Assembly (NCBI RefSeq): GCF_963921235.1
Contig: NC_086124.1
Coordinates: forward strand, 27,962,001-28,026,000
Reading direction: 5' to 3'
From: Mobula hypostoma
Lineage: Eukaryota
Length of the DNA: 64,000 nucleotides
The notes below the pieces were generated by a model, which had not been told where the DNA came from, ran no database searches, and saw only the letters and a program-made list of their open reading frames with translations. The position numbers and the translations under genes are program-made. Below, piece after piece: positions 611 through 63,321 of this stretch. The stretch's first letter is position 1. Each line of letters begins with the position of its first letter.

Positions 611-619
611 TCCACCCAC

Positions 620-928: not shown

Positions 929-1004
929 ATGGGTCGATATTGCACTGCCTGGGCGCTCCTCCTGCTCCTCGCCGCTCGTTTGGGGACTCGCAGCTCGGCG
1001 GCCG
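929..1004 (+). CDS. Signal-peptide (leader) exon, copy 1: MGRYCTAWALLLLLAARLGTRSSAA-G, phase-1 donor
   Basis: ATG at 929 in Kozak context, hydrophobic core, small residues at the cleavage site, and donor G|GTGAGT at 1004/1005. Seven nucleotide differences from the WA leader at 34893-34968. Confidence 0.8.
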
Positions 1005-1154
1005 GTGAGTCGATTCCTGTCGCGGGGATCACCGCGCTTGGTGCAGATTGTGGGATCCTGCACAGTTCGCATTGCTGGGGTCATCAACCGGGTCGGGGGT
1101 GGGGTGTTATGGGTTGGATCTTGTTGTTTAAGGGTTAAACTTCCTGGTAAGACC

Positions 1155-2127: not shown

Positions 2128-2600
2128 GACCACACTTGGAGTATTGTGTTCAGTTCTGGTTGCCTCATTACAGAGCCACATTTAATATCAGGATATTTAA
2201 ATTGGGATGTAGAAGCTTTAGAGAGTATGCTGAGGAGATTTACCAGGATTAGAGAGCCTATCTTGTGAGGTTGAGCAAGCTAGGGATTTGCTCTTTGAAG
2301 CGAAGGAGCATGAGAGGTGACTGAACAAAGATGTACAAGATAAGAGGCATTGATAGGGTGGACAGTGGAAGACTTTGCCCCAGAGTGGCAATGGCTAACA
2401 TGAAGGGGCATAACTTTAAAGTGTTTAGAGGGGGAATGTCAGAGGTAGTATATTTAGGTGTGGAACCTGGCACTGCCAAGGTTGTCATAAGGACACTTAA
2501 GAGACTCTTATAGGCACAGAGGTGACAGAATACTGGAGGCTTCTGTGTGAGGGAAGGGTTTGATTGATCGAAGGGTTGGCACAACAATGTGGACTGAAGA
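2128..2600 (+). mobile_element. CR1 LINE 3' RT/tail fragment
   Basis: RPHLEYCVQFW-type and RRFTR motifs, degenerate. Confidence 0.8.
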
Positions 2601-31629: not shown

Positions 31630-34319
31630 GTCTCAAGCTGTCAATAATGGCAAGAAGTGTTCAGCTTTTAAACTTCTGAGAAGACGTTTGAGATTCAAAA
31701 AGTGGATCAAGAGTACTGGAACCACTGAAATCATCATACGTGCGATTTTGCTTGTGTTTTCTTCGAGTTTGCTGTTGATAATCTTCACACTCAGATCCAT
31801 GGCTTTTTGCTCAATGTCTGAAAATGTGGACCAAATAATTTGAATATATCCATGCAAGGATTCATAGAGTGCACATGCTGTGTTCAAGTCTTGGCCAGAA
31901 GATTGCAAAGAAGCACTGGTCATTTGAAAACGCTGTCATACTTGATCCCACAATATGACCATTATTTCTGTTTCAAAATTCATCATGGTTGAAAGTAGTC
32001 CATGAGCCTGTTGTCGACACTTTGCCTTCTGATCATTGTTATTTGAAATGTCATCCAAGACTTGTTTTATTGCAGAAAAGCTATGTAAAACTGCTTTTGT
32101 TGCAACTGCACGAGCTGACTACCTGGTATCTGACATTCTTTTCACAATGGGGAAGTGAGCACCACCATCAGATAATGCAGCAGAAAGGAGATCCCACTGA
32201 TAAGTAAAAGCAGAAAAAATGTGTACAGGCTTTCTACAAATTGAAAGAAAATTAATGCTTCTCGACAACATTCAGCAGCACATTTTCCAACCAAATTTAG
32301 TGAATATGCAAAACACGGAATGTAATCCGCAAACTCATTCAGCTCTTTAATTCTGCCACTATACTTGCCACTCATGTCACTGGCATTGTCATAAGTTTGA
32401 CTATGGCAGTCTTTAATATCAATGTCATTTTCCTTTAAAAAGTCATGTAAACTTTGAGTGAGCTGTTCAGCACTATGACCTTCCATATCCAAAAACTTCA
32501 CAAATCTTTCAACCGGTCCAGGTGGCAAAACGTAACGCACAGTCAAAGTCAGCTGGTCCACATTCGATATATCTGGAGTAGAATCCAATGGAACCGAATA
32601 ATACTTGTATTTCTTCACTTCACCGATAATGTGATCCAGAATACTGAATCCAATCAGACTGATGAATTCCTCACATGATCTTTTAGAAAGGTATGATTTA
32701 TGTCCCCTTACTTGGTTTGCATGAGCATTTATATGCTCTGCCAGAAAAGGGTCAAAGTTGGCCAGTAATTCTAACAACCCCAAGTAATTTCCATTATGAG
32801 GAGAGCCAATGAAATGAAAAGCCGCATTCTTCTAAAAACTTTACAACTTCAATTATTCACTCCAGAAGTGTGCGCCAATACTTTTGTTCAGTCTCCATGT
32901 CTTTCACAAGTTGGAAATCGACACGCTTGGCTTTGTTTTTGTGCATCAACAGTGAAATTAAGGCTTGTCTATGTGAGGAATTTTCTTCATGTCGATGTAA
33001 TAAATTGCTTGCATTTTTCCAGTCATTAAACCCCTCTTCACTAAACTTTGATGAACATCCTGAAGTCATAACCTTGCATGGGAAACAGAATAGGCTTCCT
33101 TTGCTTTCTGAATAGCATAACCAATTTCTTGCATGTTGCTTGTTTGTAGGTTTATGAACATTTGTAAAATAAGACTTCTGACAGTGCTGAGGTTTCTTTT
33201 CATTGTCATACAACCGCATGGATGAAGAGAAGCCACTCTCAGCATGTTGACATTCATCACTTCCCTTGGCTATCCAATATTCACGATCACAATAATCTAG
33301 ATTATATGGCCATTCATCAATATCATTAGAGCACTTGGTCTTTTCACTTGTTCTTTCACATTCAATGGACGCTGGCTGTTGCTGTATCATGCCTTCTGTG
33401 GCGCTAGTACTAGTTGTTCCTATATTTCCAGCTTCAGCCATTATAGCACCATCACCATCTCCATGAACACCAAAATATTCTGTCAATTTAGGTGTTTTTG
33501 ATATCATAAGTTGGTCTCTTCTTTCTTCTTTCGCTGTACGTTTAGCACTTCCAGAAGCATGATGACGTCCAGTATCTCTGGCTCTATTGCTCATTGCTAT
33601 CTATATGAAAACAACAGCGTTAAAAGATCATCGTTGTTGTGGCGTGGATGAAATCACAGAGCGTTGTGCTCCCGGTAGGTACAAGGCAGTTTCTTTATTC
33701 GACAAAACAAGGTTACAGCAGGCAGAGACCCCTGGCAGAACATGTCTAACCACCTTGTGATTGAGGCTCGATATTTATTTGCTGAACACAAAGGACAGTT
33801 CATAGTTACAAGTATAGACAATTCTTTGAAGTTTTCACATCTTATGATTAAATTCATTCTACCAGCACCAGTATGCCTAAGCTGGCATTCACAGCCTTTT
33901 GGAATGCAAGTTAAAATCCATAATACATTATTTGGTATGTTACGTGCTAACATAGAGGACAAATCATATTCAAAAAAGCATAGATATGGTGTCTTCGCAA
34001 CTACACGTAAACTTAGCATTCTTGTGCCAGAGATGCATTGTTACAAATGACACTGGGTTCACAGCTGTTAGGAAATGCATTGTTATGAACTCAATCGACA
34101 GTACTTTGTCAAAGAACAGAAGGCTGATGGCTGAAGTCATTTATTTAAGTGTAAATTAATTGTTTACTGAAAAATCACTCTAACAGTTGTGAGAATATGG
34201 TGAGTTCGGATGCCAATTTCACCAGACTGCAGCTTGGAAGCATTTAGTGCGGGCGATGCCCTCGTAAATGTGGGGCCCATAGCATATGCTACTTTTGCTA
34301 CTAGGATAATCTGGCCCTG
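31630..34319 (-). pseudogene. hAT transposase pseudogene (TTF zinc finger/DUF4371 type) within a hAT element whose 5' end is at 34319
   Basis: Broken ORFs 32857-33594, 32142-32783 and 31633-31923 with RNWLCYSESKGSLFCFPCK, FSEEGFNDWKNA, YYSVPLDSTPDISNVDQL and QTYDNASDMSG. Terminus cagggccagattatcc. Confidence 0.85.
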
Positions 34320-34569
34320 TGTGCTCTCTGTCTTTGGAAACTCTCCTGAACAAATTTGACGAGCTCTATCCCATCTCATCCTTTTACAGTATGGGAGTCC
34401 CAGTGAATATGTGCCAAGTTAAAACCATCTACCTTATGTTTCTTGCAATAGCCTGTGATCTCTCTACAGATTTATTCCCCTGCATCCCTCGGACTGTTGG
34501 GTGGTCTGTAATATAGTCCCATTATTGTGTTCATACCTTTCTTATTTCTCAGTTCCACCCACAACACCT

Positions 34570-34892
34570 CACTAGATGAGTTCTCCAGTGAAGCCAATCC
34601 CGAGACCAGTGAGCCGGCACCCGCCAGAGACTGCGCGTGCGCTCGTCATCCGGCCGCCCGCCGCTGATTGGCTGCCGCGGCTTCCCTCCAGAGACACCCC
34701 CCTGCCCTCTCTCAGGCGTGCGACTCCGCCAGTGGTCGGGCCACTCCCTCACTCTCTTCGGCGTTGTCGCAAAAGGAGGAGTGAAGCTGGGGCTGGTACT
34801 GGGACTAGGGCGGTACGGTGGGCGGGGAAAATGGCGGGGGCGTCACCTCCTCTTGCCTCCCGCCGCTGTTTGCATTTGGGACCGTCGAAACC
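34570..34892 (+). promoter_or_regulatory. CpG-island promoter of WA with CRE half-site (34644-34650) and Y/CCAAT box (34664-34671)
   Basis: GC/CpG-rich, motifs identical to copy 1, about 220 bp upstream of the ATG at 34893. Confidence 0.7.
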
Positions 34893-34968
34893 ATGGGTCG
34901 ATATCGCGCCGCCTGGGCGCTCCTCCTGCTCCTTGTCGCTCGTTCGGGGACTCACAGCTCGGCGGCCG
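34893..34968 (+). CDS. WA: MHC W-category alpha chain, exon 1 (leader) MGRYRAAWALLLLLVARSGTHSSAA-
   Basis: Kozak ATG, signal-peptide profile, phase-1 donor G|GTGAGT. It is the only leader-like exon found upstream of the alpha1 exon, and it joins in frame. Confidence 0.8.
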
Positions 34969-35144
34969 GTGAGTCGATTCCTGTTGTGGGGATCACCGCT
35001 GTTGCTGCAGATTGTGGAATCTTGCAGAGTTCGCATTGCTGGGGTCATCAACTGGGTCGGAGGTGGGGTGTTAGGGGTTGGATCTTGCTGGCCCCGTACT
35101 ATTTTGGGTCTTGTTGTTTAAGGGTTAAACTTCCTGGTTAGACC

Positions 35145-36122
35145 TGCCACGTACCCCGTGACGGGAATAAAGAACCAGCAGAAATAGAAAACACTTTGGA
35201 GTCCAGTATTACTATTAACTAATAATATTTATTAGTAACTACGCAATACAGTAATATAAATGTAGATAAATCAAACAGGTTAGCAATGATTATTTATGTA
35301 AGTAAGTATATCAGTAAGTGTGGAAATATAAGTGAAAAACCAAGCTTCAAGTCTAGGGGTAAAAAGATACTGTCTTACGATGATGAGTAAAGTTCAGTTC
35401 AGATCATGGTGTTCAGTTGAGTAGTGATGGAGAGAGAGAGAGGGAGAGAATTGGGTCTTCAGGTGAGCTGACACCGTTGATCTCCTCGTTGTCCTCCAAA
35501 ATCCTTTAAAGTCACAGACTGTGACTTCAACAAAGGGGACCAGTTTTCTGTGGTGGAGCTATCACCCAGGCAAGGGTGGACACATGGACAACTCCCCACC
35601 AGTCACTGCCTTTTTTTTTCACTGCAAGAGTCACTGATCGATCTGCCTGATCGATCCTCCAAAAACCCACTTTTTCTATGGGCACAACAAAGCTCATTCA
35701 GTGTCCACAACACATGTCTGAGGTCTATATCATCTGACCTTCTATTTATCTCACTGTACTGAGTATCAACTGTCATTCAAATAACTCCTCCTTCCTTTCT
35801 CTGTGTAAGAAATGCAAGCAGGCAAATGTCCTTGAGAAGTATCAACACGCTGCCGAAAAATCATAACATTGATTGTCCATCAAATAAGGCTGCCTTCAGT
35901 CACCATAGCAACTTATGAGCTGCTCGGTGCCGTCTCCAACTCAGCAGAAATCCAAAAGTTAGCCAGTTCTTTCTCGTGCCTTAAAATGACAGTCCAACAG
36001 TTAGTCTTCGTCTCTCTCTCTTTCTTTTTCTCTCTCTTTTCAAAACAACATGTCGGTGTTAAATAACTCTCTCTCTCTTTTGAAAAGCACAGTTTATAGG
36101 GGTCGTTCAGGACCCCATCACA
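35145..36122. mobile_element. Solo LTR, ortholog of 1155-2127
   Basis: TG...CA ends, TSD gacc at 35141-35144 and 36123-36126. Confidence 0.8.
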
Positions 36123-36218
36123 GACCACACTTGGAGTATTGTGTTCAGTTCTGGTTGCCTTATTACAGAGCCACGTTTAATATCAGGATATTTAAAATGG
36201 GATGTGGAAGCTTTAGAG

Positions 36219-36962
36219 CAGCGGTCCCCAACCACTGAGCCGCAGATCATGTGCTACCGGGCTGTGAGGAAACAATATGAGTCAACTGCACCTTTCCTCA
36301 TTCCCTGTCACGCACTGTTGAACTTGAACATAGGGTTGCCAACTGTTCCGTATTTGCTGGGACATCCTGTATATTGGGCTAAATTGGTTTGTCCCATACG
36401 GGACCGCCTTGTCCTGTATTTCCCCTGCTAAGGTAGAGCATTCTTATGAAACCTTTCATGCCAAAATGGTTTGAAGCGAAGAAGCAATTACCATTAATTT
36501 ATATGGGAAAACTTTTTGAGCGTACCCAGATCCAAAAAATAACCTACCAAATCATACCAAATAACACATAAAACCGAAAATAACACTAACATATAGTAAA
36601 AGCAGGAATGATATAAATACACAGCCTATATAAAGTAGAAGTAATTTATGTACAGTATAGTCGGGAAGATGAAGGCAAAACCGATTTGTCGAAAAAAATC
36701 GACACTTACGTGCATGCGCACACAGGTTCCCGCGCAAGGCTTCATGGTCATGGTAGTCTTCCTTGGGGTAATGTGTCCTGGGATTTGACTGCTACTTTCG
36801 TCCCTTATTTGGGAGTGAGAAAGTTGGCAACCCTAACTGTAACAGACATGTTGAGGTGAGTTTAACCCTACCTGAACCCCCCCCCCCCCCCGGTTGGCCG
36901 ATCCACAAGAATATTGTCAATATTAAACCAGTCTGCGGTGCAAAAAAGGTTGGGAACCCCTG
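36219..36962. mobile_element. hAT MITE with a second nested hAT MITE (tagggttgccaac termini, about 36332-36838)
   Basis: Termini cagcggtccccaacc / ggttgggaacccctg, perfect 8-bp TSD ctttagag (36211-18, 36963-70). Empty site at 2216-2223 in copy 1. Confidence 0.88.
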
Positions 36963-39900
36963 CTTTAGAGAGTATGCTGAGGAGATTTACCAGGATTAGA
37001 GAGCATGTCTTGTGAGGTTGAGCAAGCTAGGAATTTGCTCTTTGAAGCGAAGGAGCATGAGAGGTGACTTAAAGATGTAGAAGATAAGAGGCATTGATAG
37101 GGTGGACAGTGGAAGACTTTGCCCCAGAGTGGCAATGGCTAACATGAAGGGGCAAAACTTTAAGGTGTTTAGAGGGGGAATGTCAGAGGTAGTATATTTG
37201 GGTGTGGAACCTCGCACTGCCAAGGTTGTCATTAAAGACATTGAAGAGACTCTTATAGGCACAGAGGTGACAGAATACTGGAGACTTCTATGTGAGGGAA
37301 GGGTTAGATTGATCAAAGGGTTGGCACAACAATGTGGACCGAAGAGCTGGCACTGCGATCTGCTGTTCTATGCACATGGTTGGTGGGATCTTGCTGTGGG
37401 CATGTAGGGATGGGGAGGGAGGAGTTGTTTAGTTGCATTTGTTGTGTGGGGGCCGTGTTATGGATTGAATAGGAATTTGTTTGATTGTGCCTTGCCCATG
37501 TTGCATGGACGCTTGCCACGTGCAGACTGGCTGGGGGTATTTTAGTGTTATAGACTTTTACAACACACAACTGGACCCTTTTGCCCACCATGTGTTTGCT
37601 GACATTTTTCTCCATCTATGCTAATCCCATCCCCCCCCCCCCCGCACCACCATTAGGACTGTATCCTGATGATACATGTACTTTGAATATACTTATACAC
37701 CTTGCCCCTTTACGTGTCTGTCCAAATACCTTTTAAATGTAGTGATTGAGCCCATTTCCACAGCCTCCGCTGGCAGCTCATTCTAGATATCAACCATTCT
37801 TTATGTAAGAAAAAAGGTGTACCCCCTCGGATCCCCTTTAAAACTCCTTCTTTTCACTTGAAATCAGTGCCCTCTTATTTCCATTTTGTATGGATCGGTT
37901 GGGATGTTGTTGTGTAACTGCTGAGTGGGATCTTGTCATGTACACAAGGTTGGACCTGATCACAGAGTGGGATTGTGTTTGTGCTTTGTGCATGTATATA
38001 GATGGGTGAGTTATTTTTGGGTGAGACATTAGACACGCTACATACAGAGTAGGGAACTTTTCTCAATATCCTAGGGCCAATGCTTATCCCACTATCAATG
38101 TCCAAAACATACGATTTTGTTCTCGATTTCCTGCCTGTACTCTATCACTCATGACTCCCTATAGATTGCAAACATCTCTCTTCATCTTAATTATATTCAA
38201 TGGCCCGAGCTTCTTAGCTTTCTATGCCTTGTATTTTCACTTGCCTCGTTCACGAGTTCAAGTCTTTTGCCTCGTTCAATATGAGAGGCTGATCAGTAAA
38301 CACTCAATATGAAATCTAATCAGTTAACTCCAAGACCTGGGCCTCAATACCCCCTTGTGCAACACACCTACATGAAACGTTGCTGTAGAAAAGCAGCATG
38401 AATCATCAAAAACCCTCACTGTCCCAGTCATGCTCTTTTCTCACTGCTGCCATCGGGTAGAAGGTACAGGGGCCTCAGGACTCGCACCACCAGGTTGAAG
38501 AACAGTTAGTATCCCTCAAACTTCAGGCTCTTGAACAAGAGGGGATAGCTACACTCACTTAAGGACTCTGTTATATTGTTATTTCATGCTCATTATTTAT
38601 TGCTATTTATTTGTATCTGCATTTACACTGTTTATTTACAGTTAACAGTTCCTGATGTTTGCAGTTGCTGTTCTATAGATTTTCCAAGTATGTTTGCAGA
38701 CAATGAATCTGAGGGTTGTATGTGGTGACATCGATGTACTCTAATAATCAATTTTATTTTGACTTTGAGATCAGAGGAGAATGTCCAAACTGGTTTCAGC
38801 TGACTCAACAGTAACTCAAATAACCATGTGTTACAATAGTTGTGTGCAGACGAACATCCCTGAATGCACAAACTGTCAAACCTTGAAGTGGATGACCTAT
38901 AGCAGCAAAACATCATGAACTCAGTGTTTATTTTATTAGGTACAGGAGATATGTAATAAAGTGGCCACTGAGTGTGAGTAGGTGTTTGTCTGCGTTCATG
39001 TTTAATGTTCATACCCAAGGTCTGGTATCCAGTTGCATTGGAATTCCTCACCATTGACCAAGACCTCACTCTTGTCAACATCATGTGGTAAATGAAGTAC
39101 AGGAGCCACTCCACTTTAAAAATATTCACATGAGGTAGCATGTCATCTTCAGCCTAAGAAGTCATACTCATAAAAAAATATTGGTATGATGCAAATAATT
39201 CTGATATTCAAAGTACATTTATTATCAAAGTGTATATACGGAAAAACATCTCTGCAGGGTATAGGATTCTTCACTGAAGCGACCCAGATCGCATAGATTG
39301 CCCTGATCAAAGTGCTCAGAAATGACTTTTTAAAAAAAAAAGGAGTAACCAGAATCCAGGAACATATCCAATATGAACCGCAAAGTCTCCCAAAATGAAT
39401 CTCCAATTGATCCTTGCAATGTTGATCCCAAGACCCCTGCATTTCCCTCCGACAGCAGCTAACAAGAGGGAGAGGAAGACCAATCATACACCGGTTGAAC
39501 TTCTGCTCTTCCTTGATCATCCTCGTTGACTTCAACCTTACTCAATGCTTCAGATGGAGAAAAGCAAGTGTCGATCATGTTTCCAGGCCACACATCCTGC
39601 TCCAAACCTCACTGAATTTCCTTGGAGACAGTAAAGCACCAGATTGCTCAACTAGTCCAAAAACACGTCATCAAAATGTAAATTGCAGGTTCCAATGGCA
39701 CGCCGATTAATAGTGGAACTTCATGTGAAATACGAAGGAGTAAAAGAAGCATATTGGTGAACTGTCAGCAGGACGTCGACATTGTTGTGTTGTTTGCTGG
39801 GCCATCTGTGTGAACCAAACTGGAATCATAACGTCACTTTTGTGAAACACCTGATCCCTCTTGGGTTGTAAGAAATTTCCATTACAGTGCCAGCTGATGA

Positions 39901-40544
39901 CCTGGGTCTTCCATTATTATTTAACTAGATTCGACTCCGTCCTAAAGAGAGATCAGCTTCGTTTTGTCAAGTGTACATTGAGTATACAGTTACGTGCGTT
40001 GTTTCCATCAATGGCCAACACAGTCCAATGATGTGCTGGGGGGTGGTGGGGGTCACACTTCCTGAGGCAACAGCTTACTCACAATTTACTAATCCTAACC
40101 CGTATGTCTTTGAGACACAGGACAGTGTTCAGGTACACCACAAGAAACAGTTGGCTGTGTTTATGGAAGGTAGAATGAGGGATGTTAATCAGGAGGGTGT
40201 GGAACAGTAAAATCTGGGGTAACAACAGCATGGGTGGGTGTTTTGCCAGGTGGAAGGCAGGATGGAGTGAATGATGATCAGCTCGTGGACAGAATTGCTT
40301 TTTGTGAGCATGCCACACAAGTGATTTAAAATGTAGGGAGTTAACAACAACATCAAGTCTACAAACTGGTTCCGGTTCAGATACTTGGAGACAAATAGAG
40401 TCAGTGTTTGAGACTGAGGCAGTGATGGGGACTAGCAGCAAAAACAGCCGAGACCAACTATTTGCTATGAAACACTAAGAAATGCTGTTTAGGGCTGTTT
40501 CAGGATTTAAGCTTCAGAATTAATTAATTGATTGATTGATTGAT

Positions 40545-41133
40545 TGTGATACAGCATGGAATAGGTCTGTCTGGCCCTTCGATCTGCACCACCCAGCAGT
40601 TCCCAATTTAATCTTAGCCTAATCACATGACAATTTACAATAACCAATTAACCTATCAACTGGTACATCTTTGGAATATGGGAGGAAACCCATGGGGCAT
40701 GGGCAGAACATATAAACTCCTTACGGGCAGTGACAGGAATTGAATCCAAGTCGCCTGTACTATAAAGCATTGTGCTAACCACTACACTACCATGCTACCC
40801 CATCTTGATCTTTAACAGTTCAGACCAGGAACTTGGTGAGCATTTTCATGAACTGTTTCCTCTCACAGACGGCATGGTAGTGTAACTCTTTACAGTGCCT
40901 GTGATTGGTTCAATTCCTGCCGCAGTCTTTATGGCATTTGTATGTTCTCTCCATGACCATGTGGGTTCTCTCCCATATTCCAAAGACGTACACATTAGGG
41001 TTAGTAAGTTGTGGGTTGGCGCTGGAAGCATGGTGACACTTATGGCTGTCCAGCACAATCCTCAGACTGTGTTGGTAGTTGACACAAACAATGCATTTCA
41101 CTATGTGTTTCAATGTACATATGACAAATAAAA
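40545..41133. mobile_element. Head-to-head V-SINE/HE1-like pair, paralog of 9590-10176
   Basis: Same architecture. Further family copies near 44790-45100, 45480-45715 and 58095-58352. Confidence 0.75.
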
Positions 41134-41569
41134 TAATTTCTATTCTTTACTTTTAATCTCTGTTAGCTTCACCAAAGAGCATTTTGCAGACATTACTTTG
41201 GTGCTGTTTGCGAGACCCTCTCACATGTGAACAACGAGCATATTTCCTTGCTGAGTGACAGTGACTGCTTTGATAGGGTCTGGGGAGGATTTGGGTCTGT
41301 GAACCTCCTGTACCTAATAAAGTGCATGTTCATGGTCTTCTGCCGCAGTAGCTCATCCACTTCAAGCTTCAACATGTTGGCCTGAAACTGCTGCAGTAGG
41401 TCTACAGTGGAGACATTCTCACTGGCTCTCCACTCAGTCTTGCAGCACCTGGACAACAGCAATACCTACATCAGGCTGCAGTTTTAGAAGTTGACAAGGA
41501 TGCATACAGGATTGAGAAAGATCAGCTGGTTGAGTGGTGTCGCAACAACAACCTTGCAGTCGATGTCAC

Positions 41570-42310
41570 AAAGTGTGTGTCCTATCATTGTACACCAAGA
41601 TTGGTCTGTCCTTGACACTCCCCACCATTCACAGTGTGTGTGTATCCTGTCATTGTGGAGTGAAGTCCCATTGTCCCTTGACACTCCCCAACATTCACTG
41701 TGTGTATCCAGCCTTTCTATACTGAGGTCCCCCGTTCCCTAATACTTTACATCATTTGCGGTGTGTGCCCTAGCTTTGTAAACCAGGTTCGCTATGACTC
41801 TCGACATCCTCTACAATTCACACTGTATGTCCTACCATTCTACACAACCTGTCCCTGGATGCACCACACCATTCATGGTGTGTGTCCTACCCTTGAACAC
41901 CGACTCGCTCTGTCTCTTGACACTCCTCACCAGTCACGTAGTCTCTCCTACCCTTGTATACGGAAGTCCATTTGAACCCCGGCTCTCCTCACCACTCATG
42001 GTGCCTTCCCCCATACACTGTGGTGCCTCTGTTCCTTGACAATCCCACCATTCCATGTACGTATCCTATCCTTGTACACTGAGATCCCTCTATCCCTCAA
42101 CACTCCCTATCATAAGCAGTGTTTGCCCTACCATTGTACACTGAGATCCTTCTATCCCTTGACACTCCCCACTATTTATGGATAGTATCTTTTGCCCTTG
42201 TACAGTGAAGTTTCACTATCCCTTGACACTCCTCATCATTTACTGTGTGTCCAACCCTTCAACACTGAGGTTTCTCTGTCCTTAGATACGCCACACCATT
42301 TACAATGTGT
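41570..42310. repeat. Degenerate minisatellite, unit about 60 bp, roughly 12 copies
   Basis: Recurring gtgtgtcctacc(a/c)ttgtacactgag...tcccttgacactcc(c)caccattca motif. Confidence 0.75.
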
Positions 42311-42484
42311 GCCAACTGAACCTTTTGACCATTTTTGCATGTTTTTATGCTGCCACATGATTGGCTAATTAGGTATTTGTATTGAGTACATGTACCTAAT
42401 TGTATGTGTAGTTTAAACATTAGTTGCAAGAATTGATAATGTGAGTTAAAAATCTTTTTTTACAATGATCTTTTTATTTCTCAG

Positions 42485-42739
42485 AGACAGACAAGTTGGC
42501 AGTCACCTTCTTCGTTACAGATGACCCCAGCCTGCCAGAGGGTGGAGCTGAGTTGAAGACCCAGGAGAGAAGTATAGCTTACTATGACACCACATCACCG
42601 AGTGTTCAGTTTCACTTGTCTGGCTTAGACCCATTCCGTTTACCTATGGATAAGCTATTAGCAGGAAATGTGCTCGCATGGGTAAAGTACCTGATGAGCG
42701 GGGCGATGTTATTAACCAACAACTCTCTTCCCCCAAATG
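42485..42739 (+). CDS. WA: MHC W-category alpha chain, exon 2 (alpha1 domain)
   Basis: Acceptor tttttatttctcag|, donor G|GTGAGT, 255 nt, phase 1-1, open frame (TDKLAVTFFVTDDPSLPEGGAELKTQERSIAYYD...LLTNNSLPPN). Class II alpha1-like length and position. Confidence 0.8.
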
Positions 42740-44349
42740 GTGAGTCAAGATAGGAACGTGAGCAGCTCAGTGTACTGACTACCATCAGTCCAATAAAGCG
42801 TCCCCAGTATGGATTTAGCTCACAGTACAGGTCCTTTGGCCCACCATGTTGTGATGACCTTTCAAACTACACCAAGATCAACCTAACCCTTTCACTTACA
42901 CAGTCCTCCAATTTCCTTTCATTTGTGTGCCTTTCTAAGAGTTTCTTAAATGCCCCTAATTTATCCACCTCCTCCACCACCCCTGGCCGGGTGTTCCACG
43001 CACCCACTAACCAGAGTTTTATAGAGCTGCAACATTACCACTCAGCTCTTGAACTCAAAACTCTTCATCCGACGTTACACCTCCTGACTCCTCTCCTGGT
43101 ACTTTCCTCCAAACACAAAGTTATTCCATATTATATTAGCCATTTCCACCCTGTGAAAAAGTCTTTGGATATCCACTCTATCTATACCTCTTATTATCTT
43201 GTACACCTCTATCAAGTCACTGCTCATCCTCCTCCTCTCTGACAAGATAAGCCCTAGCATACTCAATTTATCCACATGAGACATGTTTTCTAATCCAGAC
43301 ACCATCCTCTACACTCTCTCTAAAGCTCTGCATCTTTCCTATAGTGAGGCGACCAGACCTAAACCCAAAACACCAAGTATGGTCTAAACATTTCCATGTG
43401 GCTCTTGAACTCAAACCCCAAACTGACACAGGCCAACACATTACCTGCCTTCTTAAGATTCATTTCACTGACTACTTTCATTAGAAATTTGAGTTAAGAG
43501 CGTGTGCACAAATGGCTGGCACTGTGGTGCACTGGCATAATTAATCCTTTGTTGTATTAGGGTACTACTGGCAGTTAGTTCCGTGGCTCCATCAAATAGA
43601 TGATATGAACATTGATTGTCAAATGGCAGATGATTAACAAGCTTCCGCTTTATCTGCTTGCAGTAGAATGTTTCTGGCTGTCTTCTTTACTCTGCAGAAA
43701 CACTGAATTTCAAAAGTAAATTTTATATTGTTGGCATTGCTGAAGGGAATTACATGGACTTGGTTCGCTATCTTCCCACTATGGTTGTGTTGCCGGCAGT
43801 GAGTCGGCAGTCCCAGTAAACAGTGGATCATGTACTCTTCTTGCTGCTGCTATCATGAAGAAGTACAGGAGCCTCAGGACTGACACCACCATATTCAGGA
43901 ATACTGTAGCTATTACCCCATCAACCATCAGACTCCTGAATCAGTGGTAATAACTTCACTTGCCCCATCGCTGAAATGTTCCCACACCTATGGAGTCGCT
44001 TTCCAGGACGCTTCATCTCATATTTTTGATATTTATTGCTTATTTATTTCTTGTTATTATTTTTTTCTTCTGTATTTGCACAGTTTGCTGTGTTTTACAG
44101 ACAGGTTGTTTGTCCACCCTGTTGGGTGTGGTCTTCCATTGATTCATTTATGGTTATTGGATTTACCAAGCATGCCCACGAGAAATCAAATCTCAGGGCT
44201 GTATATAGTGAAATGTATGTGCTTTGATAATAAATTTACTTTGAACTGTAGAACTTTGAAAGAAAATATGACTGAAGTGGATTAATAGATATTAATCATC
44301 ATCTAGTGCAATTGACATTTACAAAAAAATCTTTAATTTGTTGTTTTAG

Positions 44350-44631
44350 AAATCGGTGAGCTCTATCTGTACTCAGAGAAACCAGCTGTCTTCGGGGAGG
44401 TAAACACTTTGACCTGTTTCGTCAGCGGCTTTTTCCCACCGGCCGTAATTGTAACGTTGCAGAAGAACAAGAAGCCTGTCAATGGCGAAGTTAACTCCTC
44501 ACACCTCTCATTTGGCAAAGATTGGCGATTTCAAGTGCTCCACTACACATACATCCAGCCAGCAAACGGTGACGTATACTCTTGTAGAGTGCTCCATAAC
44601 ATCAGCAAAGAGGAAAAAGTAGTTTACTGGG
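44350..44631 (+). CDS. WA: MHC W-category alpha chain, exon 3 (alpha2 Ig-C1 domain with beta-2-microglobulin-type residues)
   Basis: 282 nt, phase 1-1, canonical splice sites. LYLYSEKP...NTLTCFVSGFFPPAVIVTLQKN...HLSFGKDWRFQVLHYTYIQP...YSCRVLH...VVYW. The LSFGKDWRF motif matches b2m LSFSKDWSF, and Leu replaces the C-strand Trp as in b2m. Confidence 0.92.
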
Positions 44632-46167
44632 GTAAGAGAATTGAACCATGCTGTTATGGTTATTATTCTATAGATTTGCTGAGTATGTCTACAGGAAAAT
44701 CAACCTCAGGGTTGTATATGGTGATGTATATGTACTTTGATAATAAAATTACTTTTTGAACTTTGAAATGCTCTGGGGTAAATGATAAAGGGCAGCACAG
44801 TAGCATGATGGTTGGCGCAGTGCTTTACAACACCAACTAAAATTGAGATTCGATTGCTGTCTGTAAGGAGTTTGTATGTTCTTACCGTGACTGCATAGGT
44901 TTTGTCCAAGTGCTCTGCTTTCTTCCTACATTCCTAAGATTGGGTTAAAGTTACTGAGTTGTGGGCTTGCTCTGTCGGCACCAGCAGAATGGCGGTATTT
45001 GTGGGCTGCCCTCAGCACAATCCTCACTGATATGATTTGATGCAAAAATGATGCATTTCTCTGAATGTTTTGATCTTTCAATGTACATGTGACAAATAAA
45101 GCTAATCTCTGAAATCCAGCTCATTGCCTGCAGTGCTGACTGACAATGTTTTCCAGTGGAAGTGTTGTTGAGATCAGGATTTTAGCAAGTACGAGGACAA
45201 GCTTCCGTTAGCACATTTCAGCTGGCGTTGTACCACTCCAACCCGAGCTGGAGCCTAGCAATAGATTCAATAATGAGGGGTAGTGTTGAAGCACTCCATC
45301 CTGGATGAGATTGGTTTTAACCCTCTTGTTGCTCTGTTAGGCCAGTGGGAGGAAAAGCAGCCCAGGTTCCTGCTTACACTCAGTATTCAGCAATTCCCAG
45401 TGGAACGTGAAGGATGCAACGTGACTATTTGGGCTTTATGTCGATCAACCCCATTGCTCATGTTGCTTTTTTTTTAGTGATGCAGCTCGGAAAGGGCCGT
45501 TCCAGCCGCAGTGCTCAGCAGCTCCTGATTTTTAACAATGACAGATTAACCTACCAATTGGTACGTCATTAGACTGTGGGAGTAAACTGGAGCACCTGGA
45601 GGAAACCCAGTCCATCATGGGGAGAACATACCAACTACTTGCAGACAGCTGCAGGAATTAAACCCCGTCACTGGTATTGTAAAGTGTTGTGCCAACCTCT
45701 GCATTACTGTGCCATTGTTAGTTGACAGCCATTTAATCACAAAGTCACAGAAAAGTACAGCACAGAAGCAGGACCTTTGCCCCATCTAATCTGCCCACTC
45801 CCTTTGACCGTAGCCCTACCATCCCTGTATCTTTCCAAACTTCTCTTAAACACCGAAATCGAGCTTGCATCCACCACTTCTGCTGGGAGCTTGTTCCACA
45901 CTCTCACAGCTGTCTGAGTGAAGAAGTTTCCCCTCATGTTCACCTTTTACCCTTCATCCATGAGCTCCAGTTGTAGTCCCATCCAACCTCAGGGAAAAAA
46001 GCCTGCTTGCATTTATCCCATCTATACCTGTTGAAAAGTATTTTCAGCCGAGAATGGGGAACACGAGAAACCCAAGAGGACAATTTAGTTTCGCCAGCTC
46101 ATCTTTGTTCAAACTGATTTTAAAACTAGTTCCTTGTTTAAAATATAATTGTGTGCTTTGTTCACAG

Positions 46168-46340
46168 AACCAGAAGAACAAAGTCGTGCTGAAGGACTGG
46201 ATACAAGCCAGATTGCTGTTTTGATCTGTGGGCTGATTATAGGAATACTTGGCACAGCAGCTGGATTCTACTTATGTTTTTCGTTGCTACTGTCTGGCTG
46301 GAGCTCTTTGATAATTCGGATCAATACTCCTTCTCAATGA
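46168..46340 (+). CDS. WA: MHC W-category alpha chain, exon 4 (connecting peptide, TM, short tail, stop)
   Basis: Acceptor ttgttcacag|, phase 1. EPEEQSRAEGLDTSQIAVLICGLIIGILGTAAGFYL... has the class II alpha TM Cys/Gly pattern. TGA at 46338-46340. The spliced ORF is 76+255+282+173 = 786 nt, or 261 aa. Confidence 0.88.
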
Positions 46341-49300
46341 AAAAATAATCCCTGCATTATTTCCCAGTGGTCTGTACCTTGCTTTGTCGCAGTTTTGTGC
46401 ACTCAGATTTGTAATGCATCATTCTCTTCCATCTTAGGGTATTGACTTCAAATTCCGCTTTCGAATTTTGGTATCTTTTATTTCATCTGTCAGTCGTCCA
46501 TTTTAATGCACCGTCTGCTAAATGCAGCAGCAATCTCCTTCAGACAGATAAGATCACAGGTAGGTCGGGTCCAAAAATGAATGGCACATTCACCTTCATA
46601 AATCAAAGTATTGAGTACAGGAGTTGGGATGTTATGGTGAAGTTGCACAAGACATTGGTGAAGCTTAATTTGGAGTATTGTGTTCAGTTCTGATCACCAA
46701 CCTACAGGAAAGATATCGATAAAACTGAAAGAACGCAAAGAAAATTCACAAGGACGTTGCTGGAAGTTGCAGACCTGAATTAGAAGGAAAAGTTGAATAG
46801 GTGAAGACCATATTCCCTAGAGCATAGGAGACCAAAGGAGTTTTGAGAGAGGTGTATAAAATTATGTTGGGTGTAGATGAGATAATTGCAAGCAGGCCTT
46901 TTCCACTGAGAACTAGAGGTCATGGCTTAAGGGTGGAAGTGAAATGTTTAAGGTAAAGCTTTTCACACAGTGGGTGGTGAGAATGTGGACAGAACAAGCT
47001 GCCAAGGGAAATGGTGGATGATAGTTTGGTTTCAGCATTTAAGAGAAATTTGGATAAATATGGGTGGGAGGGGTATGGAGGGCTATGGACCAGGTGTGGT
47101 TCGATGGGACTAGATAAAATAGCAGTTCATTACAGACTAGGTGGGCAAAGGAGCCTTCTTCTGTGCTGCAGTGGTCTGACACATCTGCTTCTTCAACCAT
47201 TCTGCATCTCTGTTAGGGGAATTAATTTGCTATGGAAATCCAACTCAAGTTGGTCACAAATACTATGGACATGGACTTTGAAATGACTAGGGAATACCTT
47301 TATTCATGAATAAGGTAGAATGACTTGCTAACAGTGAGATCGCCAAGTCTTCCAAAGAATAATAGTCATAGCCTTTTTTATACATACACACAGAAATTCA
47401 ATTACATCAGTCAATGTTTAAAACAAATCAATCCTGTGAGCCTTATCAATTCCCAGGAAAATGCTAGAGACAGCCTCTTGTCTGCCCACAGCACACAGGG
47501 ATGGGTTATTAAACATCCCTGAAACTAAGATGGATTATTGCAAACATGCTGAGAGCCCAGGCTGAATGCTGAATCTTTATCCATGATATATAGAAGGTTA
47601 ATTAAATCCTTGGATCCAGTAAATTGTTAAATGTACAAAGGTATAGTTTGTTTTATGTGTTAGTATCTGACAAATGAAGGAAAAACTAGGACACTTATTG
47701 TAATTGTCAGAAACTTGACAGCCCCCAGGGTCCTCCGTACAATTTATGACCTTCAGTGTCTTCATTTTGTTCTTGCAATTGTGTTATGCACTAAGGTCAG
47801 CACTAGGCATATTGCTAATTAAAGGAAGGTGCAGAATATCTCAGATAGCTTAACGTTTTATTCAGAATTTTCTTCCAGACCGACCTACTTCTGCCCTTCT
47901 GCTCTGCTGTGCCACAAAGCGTTCATAAACCATTTCCTTACCACCAATTTCCCTATTTTCACTTCTCTTTGTGAAGTTGGTGAGATGCATTTCTGTATGT
48001 GTGAGCCATTACTGTTGTTGTAACTTAAAGCTAATCATTAAAAATAAGTCTGTGCTGTTTGTGGAGAATAAAAGGTTTGTTTTGCACAAAATCTGCAGTT
48101 CCTCATTTTTGCAACTACGGCTTCTGTAAATTACCATTTTCTTTTCCTGGATAGCTGGGTAGGTGTTTGATGGTAGGAAATTGCACGTTATCCTGCGCTT
48201 CAGACAAATGTGAATCCTGTTTAGTATCTTAGTGTTTGAGTCTTGCCAAATGATCATGCTGTTATTTACAACATACAAAAGGCACACAATGGTCTGGGAT
48301 TTTCAAAACTATCAACAACTTCAAATTAAAATGCAATTGCTATAGTCTACAAATCACTCAATTCCTGGGGCGGGGGGTGAGGGGGTGTTGCACCATTCTC
48401 AGAAATCCCCTATTGTGCCCATAGAGATTGCATGCTCCCTTTCCGTGGAAGCATTTGCACAAATGTAATACTGGAAGAGGGATAGTTAGTCAGCTCAAGC
48501 AGAGACCTTGACTGCCTGTTGCCTGGACCCGTGAATGGCCATTTTGGCTAGGCCCAGGAACGAGCCTACTGAGAGATATCTGAGTGACCCACCACGCCGC
48601 CGCCGCCCCCCCCCACAATACTGCGTGATTGTAGTTGATGAGCACAAGCATGACGTGCAGCCAGAACTTGAGCAGCAGCTTCTTCAGACATTCAAACCTC
48701 TCACACTCCACGTACATTCCGTGGCCATCTGCTCGTTCATACAAATATCTAACGAATCAATCATATTGCAGCAACTTAATGTATAAAACATGCAGAAATG
48801 TTCAAGAGGTTCAGTTGTTATTCAGACCAAACATCAGAATGGTGTTGAAATGTGATCCAAGTGACTTTGACGGTGAAATGAATGCTGGTGCCAGACGGGT
48901 GGTTCGAGTATCTCAGAAGCTGCTGAGAAAAGCTTTCCCCAACCATTGAGCACATCTACATGAAATGCTGTCGCAGGAAAGCAGCATCTATGATTAGGGA
49001 ATCCCACCACCCAGGACATGCTCTCTTCTCACTGCTGCCATCATAAAGAAGGTACAAGAGCCTCAGGATAACTTCACTTCCCCATCATTGAAATGTTGCT
49101 ACCACCAGTGGACTAATTTTCAAGAACTCTTCAGCTCACGTTTTTGATATTTATTCTTATTTATTATAATTTCTTTTTTGTATTTGCAGAATTTGTCTTT
49201 TGCCCAAGTTGATCTGGTCTTTTATTGATTGTGGGTGTTTTATGTCGGTTGAAAAGAAATCCCAGTGTTGACGTGTATTTTGATAATAAATTTATTTTAA

Positions 49301-60144: not shown

Positions 60145-61093
60145 TATAATGGCTCCACATCTTGCCTGTTCACTTGTCTGCCAAAATGGTCTTAAACATT
60201 GCTATCGTATCTCGTTTCACCACCTCCCCGGTACCCCTGGTGCCGACCGCTCTCGGTGTAGAACAGTTCTCCTCACAAATATCCATTAACGTTTCCTCTC
60301 TCACCATGAATCTGCACCATCGAACATTTGATAAACACAAGGGGTTCTGCAGATGCTGGAAAATCCAGAGCAACAAACATAAAATGCTGGAGGAATTCAG
60401 CAGGTGAGGCAGCAACGATGGAGGGGAACAAACAGTCAATGTTTCAGGTCAAGAACCTTCGTCAGGACCGGAGTGGAAGGAGACAGAAGTAAGAATAAAG
60501 TGGGGTGAGGGAAAGGAATACATGACACTGGGATAGTGAGTAGCATCCAACCTGATGGCATGAATATTGATTTCTCTAACTTCTGGTAATATCTCTCCCC
60601 TTCCCATCCTATATTTATCCATTCCCCACTCTGGCTACCCATTACCCCTTCACTTCTCCTCACCTGCCCAGTGCCTCCCTATGGTGTCCCTCCACCTTCC
60701 TTTTCTTCCAAGGTCCAATCTCCTCTGCCATCAGATTAGGTGAGTGTGGGGAGCTGATTGAATGTCTCTAGTGTGTAGGTGTGGGGTGGGGGGTGGTTAA
60801 TTGGAGCTAATGGGAATGTTGGAAGAACAAAGTTGGATAAATGTAATTGGATATTTGATGGTCAGTATGAACTAACGGTCTGTTTCCTGTTTGAATTACT
60901 TCTTGTTCTCTGACCTGCCCTTGTGTTATACCACACTTAGTGTAGATCTTGGTGTGATAACCCTTGCTGAATCATTGGGTCTCGGATGACCAGATTGGGT
61001 ATTTGGCCCATTGGATACCTGCAGCTTCTTTTATGAAATGCATGAAGGAAAGGAGTTTCCCGGACCGATGAGTATGTGCAAAAATATTCCTAC

Positions 61094-61195
61094 CTTTCCA
61101 CTTGACGATTCCTCCGGACACTGCCATCAGAATGCCAATTATTCCAGCGATTACTCCAATCACATATCCATAGACTGGTTTGGTATTCTTGGGAA
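61094..61195 (-). CDS. WB: MHC W-category beta chain, connecting peptide/TM exon
   Basis: Acceptor tgattttcctag|, donor G|GTAGGA, 102 nt, phase 1-1. VPKNTKPVYGYVIGVIAGIIGILMAVSGGIVKWK is a Gly-patterned TM followed by basic residues. The downstream cytoplasmic exon was not identified. Confidence 0.85.
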
Positions 61196-63039
61196 CTAGG
61201 AAAATCAGTAAAACTGGGGTCAGAAGATATTACAGCAGAGAGCAGTTTGGTCTCAGTTGGTCAGAATATATTACAGCAGACAGTTTAGATGAATATTGTG
61301 GGGTGATCTCATTCAATCCTATCAAATATTGAAAGGCCAAAATAGTTTGGACACAGAGAGGGTGTTCCAAATACTGGGAGAGTCTCGGACCAGAGGACAC
61401 AGCCTCAGAATAGGACAGAAATAAGGAGGAATTTCCTTAGCTAAATCCCTGGAATTCATTACCACATATTGCTCTGGAGGCCAAGTCATTGGCTATATTT
61501 AAGGGTGAAGTTTATAGGCTCTTAATTTTTAAGGGTGTCAAAGGTTATGGGGAGAAGGCAGAAATATCGGGTTGAGAGGATAACAAATCAGTCATGATCA
61601 CATGCCAGAACAGACCCAATAGGCCAAATAGACAAATTCTGCTCCTATAATTTATGATCTTATGATGATCAGCATGGACCAGTTGGGCTGAAGGGCCCAT
61701 ATCTGTATAACTCCATGACTGATGTAGAAAGAGGAGCTACTAGTCCTCACCAAGTTACAGTAGGATTCTGTTCCTGAGAACCATTTGTAACCTGAATGGG
61801 TTGAAAATGTGAACCCAATCACCCAATCATGTGGCAGCAACTCGACGCAAAAAAAGCATGCAGACATGGCCAAGAGGTCCAGTTGTTGTTGAAACCAAAC
61901 ATCAGAATGAGGAAGAAGTGTGATCTCAGTGACTTTGATTATGGAATCTGGTCAAAATGGTACCTGCGTACAATGTCTACTCGGTCGACATCTATCAGAA
62001 AATTCATGAAAATGGTTATTTCACTTCTTTTACGTCTGCTTCTCATCTTAAACGTGTTTCTGGAACTGTTACGCATCTGTGATTTACAGTCTGAAGATCA
62101 ACAGAGTGACTTAGTGCTTTGCTGTTTCAATGAAAGTGAGTGCAAGCTCGAACGGCCTTAAAGTGAAATAGTTTAGAGATGGTGCACCAGCCAATGATAG
62201 ACTCCATTTCACCGATTAAAGCATCGAGGAAAATTGAAATCAAGATGAGTGCAGAAAGGTGAGTGAGGGTTTAGCACTGACTGCTGTTTGATTGCAGGGA
62301 GGGATCTCTCTGTTGTCAGATGAGTTGTGTAGTACCTTTCACTCACTGTTGCCGGAGGGTAGGCCTCTGTGTTTCAGTAGTCTCTCTATCTCTATCTCCC
62401 AACACTGGTCAGAGGATAATACTGGGGCTCTGCGGCAATTATTTCTCGTTATTGTGTGGCGTGTTTTGTTAGTTCTTTGTGTGAAAGAAAGGAGTTTGGG
62501 GTTTGATGTTCTTGTTCTTGACAGCTTTTTTTTGTGTGGTGTGGGTTTTGATGTTTATCTTTGAATGATTTCTGTGCATTTATTTGTACTGTGGCTATCT
62601 GGAGAAGAAGAATCTCGGAGTTGTATACTGAGTACATAATTTTTTAATAAATGAACCTTTGAACGATTGTTGATGCCTGACGGGGTGATTTGAGTATCTC
62701 AGAGACTGTTGAGCTTCTGGGATTATCAGGCACGAGTCTCTAGAGTTTACAGTGAATACTGTGAGAAAAAAAAGACAACACCAAACATCTATTGAGTGGC
62801 AGTTGTGGGCGAAAACACCTTGTCAGTGAGATTTCAGAGGAGAATGGCCAGACTGGTTCACGCTAGTGGATGGGCTACAGCAGCATAAGACCATGACCTT
62901 ACACTCAATGGTCACTTTATTATGTAGAGGAAGTGCCTAATAAAGTGGCCACTGAGTGTATAATATAGTGTTGGACAGAGTGTGAACCAGATCATCACCA
63001 GTACACTGGACCCCAAATTATTCAGACTCTGAGCCTTAC

Positions 63040-63321
63040 CCCAAACTGCATGCAGCTTTCCAGGGACGCTCAAATGCTTGATTTCACAAGTGTAAGTGTC
63101 ACCCTTCCCGGGGTCAATGTTGACCTGTTGCCGGACTTGGAATGTCCCATCCCGGTTGGGTAAAATGCTTGTATTTAGCACTTCCCGATCGATTCCTTCA
63201 CCATTCCGCAGCCACATTACGTGGATATCCTTGGGATAAAATCCATGCACTTGGCATGTCAGGGCCAAGGTATTCTCTCTGTTCTTCATGTGTCTTGAGG
63301 TTATTGTGATAGTCGGCTTCG
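63040..63321 (-). CDS. WB: MHC W-category beta chain, beta2 Ig-C1 exon (class I alpha3-like residues)
   Basis: Acceptor tttctgtccactgcag|, donor G|GTAAGG, 282 nt, phase 1-1. KPTITIT...LALTCQVHGFYPKDIHVMWLRNG...ILPNRDGTFQ...YTCEIKHLS...AVW. LPNRDGTFQ has the class I alpha3 Pro and Gly (RPAGDGTF), not the class II beta2 Trp (NGDWTF). Leader and beta1 exons lie beyond 64000. Confidence 0.85.

Follow-up and report, generated by a model that had tools for sequence, protein, structure and literature searches.

What kind of MHC gene is one whose exons follow the plan of a class II alpha chain and whose Ig domain looks like beta-2-microglobulin (b2m)? Such a gene lies in the 64-kb stretch of Mobula hypostoma DNA analyzed here, which is called the window below and whose first letter is position 1. 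A class II build with a b2m-like Ig domain is the mark of the W-category, a third kind of MHC described in 2021 (Okamura et al., PNAS 2021; PMC8713811). An earlier note on this DNA had placed the gene in that category and cited this paper; the paper does say what the note ascribed to it, and the placement agrees with five features of the alpha2 domain, with the ranking of b2m in similarity searches and with alignment to the published WA_DS10 sequences. It is thus very probable that this devil ray (Mobula) has at the locus an intact WA alpha chain gene that belongs to the WA_DS10 lineage, and the gene is a further member of a family already known.

The gene consists of four exons (Table 1) separated by introns that are all of phase 1, and its splice sites are all canonical: the acceptor of exon 2 is tttatttctcAG, exon 3 has the acceptor ttgttttAG and the donor G/GTAAGA, and exon 4 follows gttcacAG and ends with the stop codon TGA. 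The reading frame is intact, and the CDS of 786 nt encodes 261 aa plus the stop, which reproduces both the length and the exon plan of the intact four-part gene proposed before. Exon 1 encodes the signal peptide MGRYRAAWALLLLLVARSGTHSSAA plus the first base of the E26 codon, and this peptide has one difference from the N-terminus of P0011, a 261-aa protein of Mobula birostris. P0011 aligns with the spliced product over residues 1-261 without a gap and at 95.4% identity, the 12/261 substitutions being one in the leader, four in alpha1, two in the 94 residues of alpha2 and five in the connecting peptide, transmembrane and cytoplasmic parts; the gene spans 11.4 kb in M. hypostoma versus 14.4 kb for P0011. 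The junctions between exons 1 and 2 and between exons 2 and 3 are predicted from homology to annotated proteins. When 1.84 billion representatives were searched with the alpha1 exon, only elasmobranch proteins of the alpha1, Ig and transmembrane (TM) build were retrieved, apart from P0003 and P0006, which are bacterial repeat proteins and were discarded as spurious. Because of this search and the gap-free match to P0011, a chance assembly of open frames is excluded.

Table 1. Coordinates of the WA gene, its promoter region and the neighboring WB gene in the window
Feature	Position	Strand	Remark
Promoter, leader exon and first 1.25 kb of intron 1	33934-36218	+	duplicated at window 1-2223
Promoter block	34625-34686	+	62 nt, identical in both copies (copy-to-copy alignment)
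CRE-like half site CGTCA	34644-34648	+	within the 62-nt block
Inverted CCAAT/Y-box-like CTGATTGG	34664-34671	+	15 nt beyond CGTCA, about 225 bp upstream of ATG
Exon 1, ATG and signal peptide	34893-34968	+	76 nt, donor G/GTGAGT
Exon 2, alpha1 membrane-distal domain, residues 26-110	42485-42739	+	255 nt, donor G/GTGAGT
Exon 3, alpha2 b2m-like C1-set Ig domain, residues 111-204	44350-44631	+	282 nt
Y118 codon	44370-44372	+	LYLYS motif, aligns with b2m Tyr of QVYS
W169 codon	44523-44525	+	HLSFGKDWRF motif, aligns with b2m Trp
Exon 4, connecting peptide, TM, short cytoplasmic tail and stop	46168-46340	+	
3' UTR, at least first 167 nt	46341-46507	+	mismatch-free contig X1 record 4
WB TM-like open frame	60975-61229		lies in this interval
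WB beta2 Ig exon, candidate partner	63040-63321	-	carries ...LPNRDGTFQ...

To which lineage of the W-category does the gene belong? Its alpha1, alpha2 and TM segments can be aligned with the WA_DS10 entries in Datasets S1-S3 (PMC8713811), and the alignment with the WA_DS10-like rows of little skate is free of gaps in all three. The exon plan is like that of WA_DS10 of banded houndshark and of the WA_DS10-like genes of little skate and cloudy catshark, and so are the opening of alpha1 (FFxTDDPSLP...YYDTT), the alpha2 pattern EIGExxLYSEKP...NSSHLSFxxDWRF...YSCxVxHxISxE..YW and the connecting peptide and TM pattern EPE...DxSQ..VLICGxIIGILGxAxG, with all the WA- and b2m-type residues present in the ray gene. 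A homologue on a 159,043-bp catshark contig, P0007, has an alpha1 string identical to the authors' WA_DS10-like entry and, judged by this sequence and by the contig that it shares with that entry, is the cloudy catshark WA_DS10-like gene of Okamura et al. (PMC8713811). In a maximum-likelihood tree of WA proteins and teleost class II alpha chains, the gene pairs with that of M. birostris (99/96) within a myliobatiform WA clade (100/99), and the WA clade is separated from conventional class II alpha by a long branch (100/100). The host sets the gene apart from published WA_DS10, since the supplementary text covers sharks and skates (PMC8713811) and the order of the myliobatiform rays is absent from it. 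In addition, the alpha1 helix is three residues shorter than in most WA_DS10 sequences, a deletion common to the Hemitrygon copies. The WA_DS10 lineage is thereby extended to myliobatiform rays, and two ray sublineages are revealed together with a rearranged locus.

Even if the gene is a true WA gene, it might be a silent or pseudogenizing copy, WA_DS10-type transcripts coming from a paralogue in the cluster. We regard this as quite improbable, although it is the alternative that survives best. The evidence for expression is weak. It comes from contigs, of depth 2-4, assembled from same-species runs that were guessed to be RNA. Two of them, 72 nt in exon 3 (44473-44544) and 244 nt in exon 4 plus 3' UTR (46264-46507), are free of mismatches and fit the window copy. 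Another one (record 12) fuses 44548-44630 to 46167-46274 exactly at the predicted splice sites of exons 3 and 4, but mismatches the window at 6 of its 191 nt and may therefore stem from an allele or a paralogous WA gene. Several of the contigs show about 5% divergence from the window, and no 31-mer of the alpha1 exon was found in the three runs. The promoter and leader are duplicated in a rearranged locus, and in a stingray the diagnostic Trp is gone from the paralogue P0015, which also would suit a copy in decay. Against this stand the intact frame, the canonical splice sites, the retention of all the diagnostic residues, and the small number of differences from M. birostris, above all in alpha2.

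Could the gene, on the other hand, simply encode a class II alpha chain, be it conventional or non-classical (DAA- or DM-like), with a superficial resemblance to b2m? The class II character of the chain is real. Domain order, fold and the TM glycine string are those of class II alpha chains (HLA-DR, -DP, -DQ and -DM; teleost P0021-P0025), and the class II alpha-like architecture claimed before was borne out by the four exons, by the secondary structure of the AF2 model and by Foldseek, which superposed the model of the full chain onto the alpha chains of DM, DP and DR with TM-scores of 0.66-0.74 by target. The TM pattern is C225-G226xxxG230xxG233xxxG237, and the string at 226-237, GLIIGILGTAAG, follows the GxxxGxxGxxxG pattern common to P0021-P0025 and known as the TM motif of class II alpha chains (PMC13399432). 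The class II alpha consensus has the TM Cys as CxxG (PMC13399432). The class II alpha-like TM proposed in the earlier note stands by its glycine string, with the qualification that Cys and the first Gly are directly adjacent here. The product is a predicted type I membrane glycoprotein with a TM helix of class II alpha type. Also, P0011, which has the same four-part build, bears the NCBI name 'RLA class II histocompatibility antigen, DP alpha-1 chain-like', a class II DP name that hides its W-category identity.

The Ig domain, however, tells another story. Pfam recognizes it as a C1-set domain (1.9e-19), and a PDB search with the Ig exon gave b2m in all of the best 60 matches (70-72 bits), with 43% identity to human b2m. 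The affinity of alpha2 was judged from like-for-like bit scores and Foldseek ranks. With phmmer, the window alpha2 reached 70-72 bits with b2m vs 42-47 bits with class II alpha of teleosts. A WA alpha2 profile scored 78-81 vs 50-65 bits, and b2m leads by 15-30 bits. The matches of a profile of alpha2 plus TM were WA proteins along with five class II alpha chains of teleosts; neither b2m nor elasmobranch DAA was among them. Among Swiss-Prot AlphaFold structures, b2m accounts for 28 of the best 30 Foldseek matches of the alpha2 model (37-44% identity), the TM-score to b2m structures being 0.81-0.88; HLA-DM alpha at rank 4 and H2-M alpha at rank 14, both at 36% identity, are what a class II reading can draw from that list.

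The residues point the same way. Published WA alpha2 hallmarks are W61, L55, F/Y57, Y8, which is the partner of P57 in WB and class I, and F/L37 in place of the Ig Trp, and the Trp at position 61 gave the W-category its name (PMC8713811). All five are found here as W169, L163, F165, Y118 and L147, and they are conserved among 17 homologues, Y118 invariantly and W169 in 16/17. L163 and F165 align with the Leu and Phe of b2m DLSFSKDW, and L147 (VTLQ) stands 14 residues after C133, an offset at which teleost class II alpha has Trp. Other key residues are C133, N159, C189 and the terminal W204. The b2m-type interface residues listed in the earlier note (Tyr in strand A, LSFGKDWRF, Leu for the C-strand Trp) were therefore confirmed; the terminal Trp that it added is present but not specific to b2m, because the conventional class II alpha chains P0021 and P0023 have one too. 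The domain shares with b2m the Tyr of strand A, the Leu that stands where other Ig domains have Trp, the L/F/W of the D-E region and the Trp at the C-terminus.

The alpha1 domain gives the class II reading little help. No match to PF00993 (MHC_II_alpha) was found by Pfam in alpha1 of the window or of P0011, while the teleost class II alpha P0021 matches it at 3.3e-24. The AF2 model has four strands followed by two helices (pLDDT 75-82), identity to a WA-type protein of Amblyraja is 52%, and there is an N-glycosylation site at N104. Residues characteristic of class I, e.g., V30, were described in the first half of WA alpha1 (PMC8713811); position 30 is Glu here and in every DS10-lineage row, and L24-P25-E26 and Y41-D42 are like the class I rows. 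Overall identity to class II alpha is 21-26%. Given the missing PF00993 match, the Leu where class II alpha invariably has the C-strand Trp, the b2m/WA-type interface, the lead of b2m in bit scores, the long and fully supported branch of the WA clade and the direct match to the published WA_DS10 rows, the class II alpha reading is largely refuted and has in our view very little probability left.

The reverse idea, that the Ig exon belongs to an ordinary b2m gene and that what look like alpha1 and TM exons are open frames arisen by chance, might appeal to the PDB matches, to the possibility of splicing a leader exon to the Ig exon in frame, both being of phase 1, and to truncated homologues named 'beta-2-microglobulin-like' by NCBI, but it is refuted, with hardly any probability remaining, by the contig in which the Ig and TM exons are fused at the splice sites, by 17 elasmobranch proteins in which alpha1 and TM are kept in order and in frame (junctions PPN/EIGE and YW/EPE), and by the 95% identity with the M. 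birostris protein along the full 261 residues. Indeed, b2m is a soluble single domain of about 100 aa, while the Ig domain of the ray is one exon between those of alpha1 and TM. It is to be noted that homologues of this gene carry names such as 'class II ... alpha chain-like' or 'beta-2-microglobulin-like', just as had been anticipated, and that such public names hide W-category genes.

What would a WA alpha chain of the DS10 lineage do? Most likely, the product is a non-classical MHC molecule of low polymorphism. By analogy with the family, it would form a heterodimer with a W-category beta chain, be expressed on the cell surface and possibly bind some ligand. Its alpha1 domain would provide one half of the MHC platform (four strands and a helix), and W169, L163 and F165 may press on the underside of the alpha1/beta1 sheet in the way that W60, L54 and F56 of b2m do in class I. 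Y118 might form a bond with the Pro that is conserved in WB beta2, and the GxxxG glycines may pack the TM helices of WA and WB together.

A segment at the 5' side of the gene is duplicated. The two copies have 90.2% identity over 2291 bp by blastn within the window, whose edge truncates the second copy; the leader in that copy lies around 929-1010. The 62-nt block is the only perfectly conserved block of the promoter, and CTGATTGGCT occurs twice in the 64 kb, at both of the duplicated copies, against 0.21 expected. A promoter function of CGTCA and CTGATTGG is inferred from their sequence. A CRE half site 15 nt before a Y box resembles the X2-Y portion of the SXY enhanceosome module known from MHC promoters. 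It is conceivable, though unlikely, that the gene was uncoupled from an ancestral head-to-head WB gene after duplication of promoter and leader and that the X2-Y-like block drives its expression. If so, W-category genes of rays would be under CIITA/NLRC5-type control, which would give them a functional link with antigen presentation.

Is there a beta chain nearby? The published WA/WB pairs of shark, teleost and coelacanth are head-to-head, and in the catshark DS10/DS1 pair the start codons are separated by 272 bp (PMC8713811). In contrast to that catshark pair, the WB gene of the ray is tail-to-tail with the WA gene, about 14.5 kb apart, and the WA gene has a duplicated promoter and leader. 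A divergent WB leader was looked for on the minus strand over about 900 bp ahead of the WA ATG, and no convincing signal-peptide ORF was found there. Owing to the tail-to-tail arrangement, the neighboring WB stays a candidate partner only; a complex prediction of alpha2 with its beta2 domain scored 0.09, which counts neither way. An intact WA gene beside a WB gene nevertheless provides material for expression and structural work. P57 and G61 are described for the WB beta2 domain (PMC8713811), and the beta2 exon in the window has Pro and Gly at the sites 57 and 61, complementary to the WA residues.

The WA gene consists of four exon-sized open frames, all with canonical splice signals (see table). 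Its introns are of phase 1 throughout and the spliced exons amount to 786 nt, or 261 amino acids, so that the intact gene with a product of this length claimed by the earlier note is borne out. The exon 1 product is a typical signal peptide. The exon 1-exon 2 and exon 2-exon 3 junctions are predicted from homology, and the homologue junctions PPN/EIGE and YW/EPE coincide with the predicted splice sites. Over residues 1-261 the product aligns without gaps, at 95.4% identity, to P0011, an NCBI-annotated protein of Mobula birostris. The window is free of N and contains only one WA gene of this kind; the only other Ig match of the WA protein in it lies at 63074-63262 on the reverse strand. When the alpha1 exon was searched against 1.84 billion representative proteins, seven matches were obtained, five of them from elasmobranchs (Amblyraja, Heterodontus, Pristiophorus, Hemitrygon and Scyliorhinus) with the order alpha1, Ig and transmembrane (TM) as in the window gene; the other two, bacterial repeat proteins, were set aside as spurious.

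Features of the WA gene and of the neighbouring WB gene (slash, exon boundary)
Feature	Position	Strand	Remarks
WA exon 1	34893-34968	+	ATG; 76 nt; donor G/GTGAGT
WA exon 2	42485-42739	+	255 nt; acceptor polypyrimidine tract + AG; donor G/GTGAGT
WA exon 3	44350-44631	+	282 nt; acceptor ttgttttAG; donor G/GTAAGA
WA exon 4	46168-46340	+	acceptor gttcacAG; stop TGA
WB beta2 exon	63040-63321	-	282 nt; phase 1-1; ...LPNRDGTFQ...
WB TM-like frame	about 60975-61229	-	open frame (VIGVIAGIIGILMAVSGG), downstream of the beta2 exon

The alpha2 domain of WA has been defined by W61, L55, F/Y57, Y8 and F/L37, the last of which replaces the Ig Trp (Okamura et al., 2021; PMC8713811). All five are present in the window protein, as W169, L163, F165, Y118 and L147 (C133 + 14), respectively; thus the beta-2-microglobulin (b2m)-type residues read earlier from the sequence, a strand-A Tyr, LSFGKDWRF and Leu for the C-strand Trp, are indeed there. 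Among 17 aligned homologues Y118 is invariant, L147 and W169 are nearly so, and L163 and F165 differ in few copies, the sole exception at W169 being the Hemitrygon paralogue P0015. This protein and P0018, also from Hemitrygon akajei, have Arg for the diagnostic Trp (KDRRF) and YPC for YSC, and in P0018 a portion of the C strand is missing as well; from their sequences, both appear to be WA paralogues that are decaying or have taken on a new function. The terminal Trp, to which the earlier note had also pointed, is present but does not discriminate, as class II alpha carries one too. The TM segment C225-GLIIGILGTAAG has the glycine string typical of class II alpha chains, GxxxGxxGxxxG, in line with the class II alpha-like Cys-Gly pattern of the earlier note, but its Cys stands directly before the first Gly, likewise in the little skate DS10-like row, and not in the CxxG spacing of the CxxGxxxGxxGxxxG string that is also found in W-category alpha chains (PMC13399432, 2026).

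Judged by sequence, the nearest solved relatives of the Ig exon, a C1-set domain (Pfam, 1.9e-19), are b2m. The 60 PDB sequences that match it best are all b2m itself or fusions with it, with 70-72 bits for free b2m, and 39 of 90 aligned positions (43%) are identical to human b2m; a profile of the 17 WA alpha2 domains scores 78-81 bits against b2m. With the same programs, five conventional, PF00993-positive teleost class II alpha chains (P0021-P0025) gave 42-47 bits against the single alpha2 sequence and 50-65 bits against the profile. Modelled alone (pLDDT 88), alpha2 retrieved b2m in 28 of the 30 best Swiss-Prot entries of Foldseek (37-44% identity, TM-score 0.81-0.88), the remaining two being DM alpha chains (36% identity).

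No Pfam match was found for WA alpha1. AlphaFold2, run with P0011 (95% identical) as the first row, the spliced window protein having no single reference, predicts four strands and then two helices (pLDDT 75-82), which in the model is the fold of half of an MHC platform. As a whole, the modelled chain can be superposed on HLA-DM, -DP, -DR and -DQ alpha (TM-score 0.66-0.74 by target, 180-190 columns, 21-26% identity), and its best 16 matches among Swiss-Prot AlphaFold models are all class II alpha chains. The class II alpha-type exon plan (leader, alpha1, alpha2, TM) proposed earlier is retained.

To which lineage does this gene belong? The alpha1 row of cloudy catshark "WA DS10L 159K" (PMC8713811, Datasets S1-S3) is the sequence of the catshark protein P0007, whose gene lies on a contig of S. 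torazame that, at 159,043 bp, is equal in size to BFAA01007584 of the same paper. The alpha1, alpha2 and TM rows of the little skate WA_DS10-like chain are highly similar to the window protein and align with it gap-free. In a maximum-likelihood tree of 22 proteins, comprising WA and conventional teleost class II alpha chains, the window gene pairs with M. birostris (99/96) within a five-member myliobatiform subclade (100/99), to which a 3-residue alpha1 deletion is common and whose sister is a second myliobatiform subclade (Hypanus, Hemitrygon); a long, fully supported branch lies between all WA and conventional class II alpha. Together, the catshark identity, the skate rows and the tree identify the gene as a WA of the DS10 lineage, and the earlier assignment to the W-category of Okamura et al. 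is supported. The family was described in 2021, and NCBI already lists the orthologue, with a class II name. PMC8713811 deals with sharks and skates, and its supplements name neither a stingray nor a manta; the window gene is locally peculiar in that it comes from a ray, carries the alpha1 deletion, has had its promoter and leader duplicated and has a WB gene tail-to-tail with it. It had also been expected that pipelines would mislabel WA as class II alpha or b2m-like, and both kinds of label occur: besides the orthologue, the N-terminally truncated WA models P0005 (Hemitrygon akajei) and P0017 (Scyliorhinus canicula) are called 'beta-2-microglobulin-like' in NCBI. Full-length WA models bear the names of various mammalian class II alpha, even beta, chains, and none of the NCBI names of the WA homologues found carries a W-category label.

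WA and the WB gene are arranged tail-to-tail, their 3′ ends about 14.5 kb apart. The WB beta2 exon encodes Pro and Gly of the Pro57/Gly61 type of class I and WB, whereas in conventional class II beta Pro is not conserved at the first of these sites and the second is an invariant Trp; therefore, residues complementary to those of WA adjoin the WA gene. By analogy with its family, WA would pair with a WB chain: its b2m-type Trp, Leu and Phe would touch the alpha1/beta1 sheet from below, Y118 would form a bond with the Pro of WB beta2, and the glycines of the TM segment would mediate helix packing. Differences from M. birostris number 4 of 85 residues in alpha1, 2 of 94 in alpha2 and 5 of 57 in the connecting peptide, TM and cytoplasmic tail; by this comparison of two species, alpha1 shows little sign of the hypervariability of a classical groove.

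The segment 33934-36218, which comprises the promoter and leader as well as 1.25 kb of intron 1, recurs at 1-2223 with about 90% identity; the duplication is at least 2.3 kb long, its first copy being cut by the window edge. Within it, a 62-nt promoter block (34625-34686 and 682-743) is identical between the copies, against a divergence of about 10% in its flanks. The block contains a CRE-like CGTCA and, 15 nt downstream, CTGATTGG; its inverted CCAAT is CTGATTGGCT, a 10-mer which occurs in the 64 kb at these two sites only (0.21 expected). No clear RFX/X1 half site was found in the WA promoter. The arrangement of CGTCA and CCAAT resembles the spacing of X2 and Y in MHC SXY modules such as that of the HLA-DRA promoter, and the block may, as a lead from sequence, be the X2-Y-like part of such a module. 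Spacing in SXY modules is tightly constrained (PMC4374748).

Evidence of transcription comes from low-depth contigs of three same-species runs (X1-X3) guessed to be RNA. A 72-nt contig on exon 3 and a 244-nt contig from exon 4 into the 3′ UTR, up to 46507, have no mismatches. A third, of 191 nt, fuses 44548-44630 with 46167-46274, which is the predicted exon 3-exon 4 splice; because it has six mismatches, it may derive from an allele or paralogue. No 31-mer of the alpha1 exon was found in the three runs. Thus, given the mismatched junction contig and this absence, transcription of the window copy itself is likely rather than certain. The contigs at 44352-44630 and 46167-46274 form two classes, window-identical or about 5% divergent, which points to transcripts from another, closely related WA allele or paralogue. 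Within 42200-47800, summed contig depth reaches thousands at 42950-43320, 43700-44250, 44630-45190, 45570-46130 and 46500-47060; depth as high as this identifies these stretches, which lie in introns 2 and 3 and in the flank downstream, as members of abundant interspersed repeat families, and the WA exons occupy the low-depth gaps between them.
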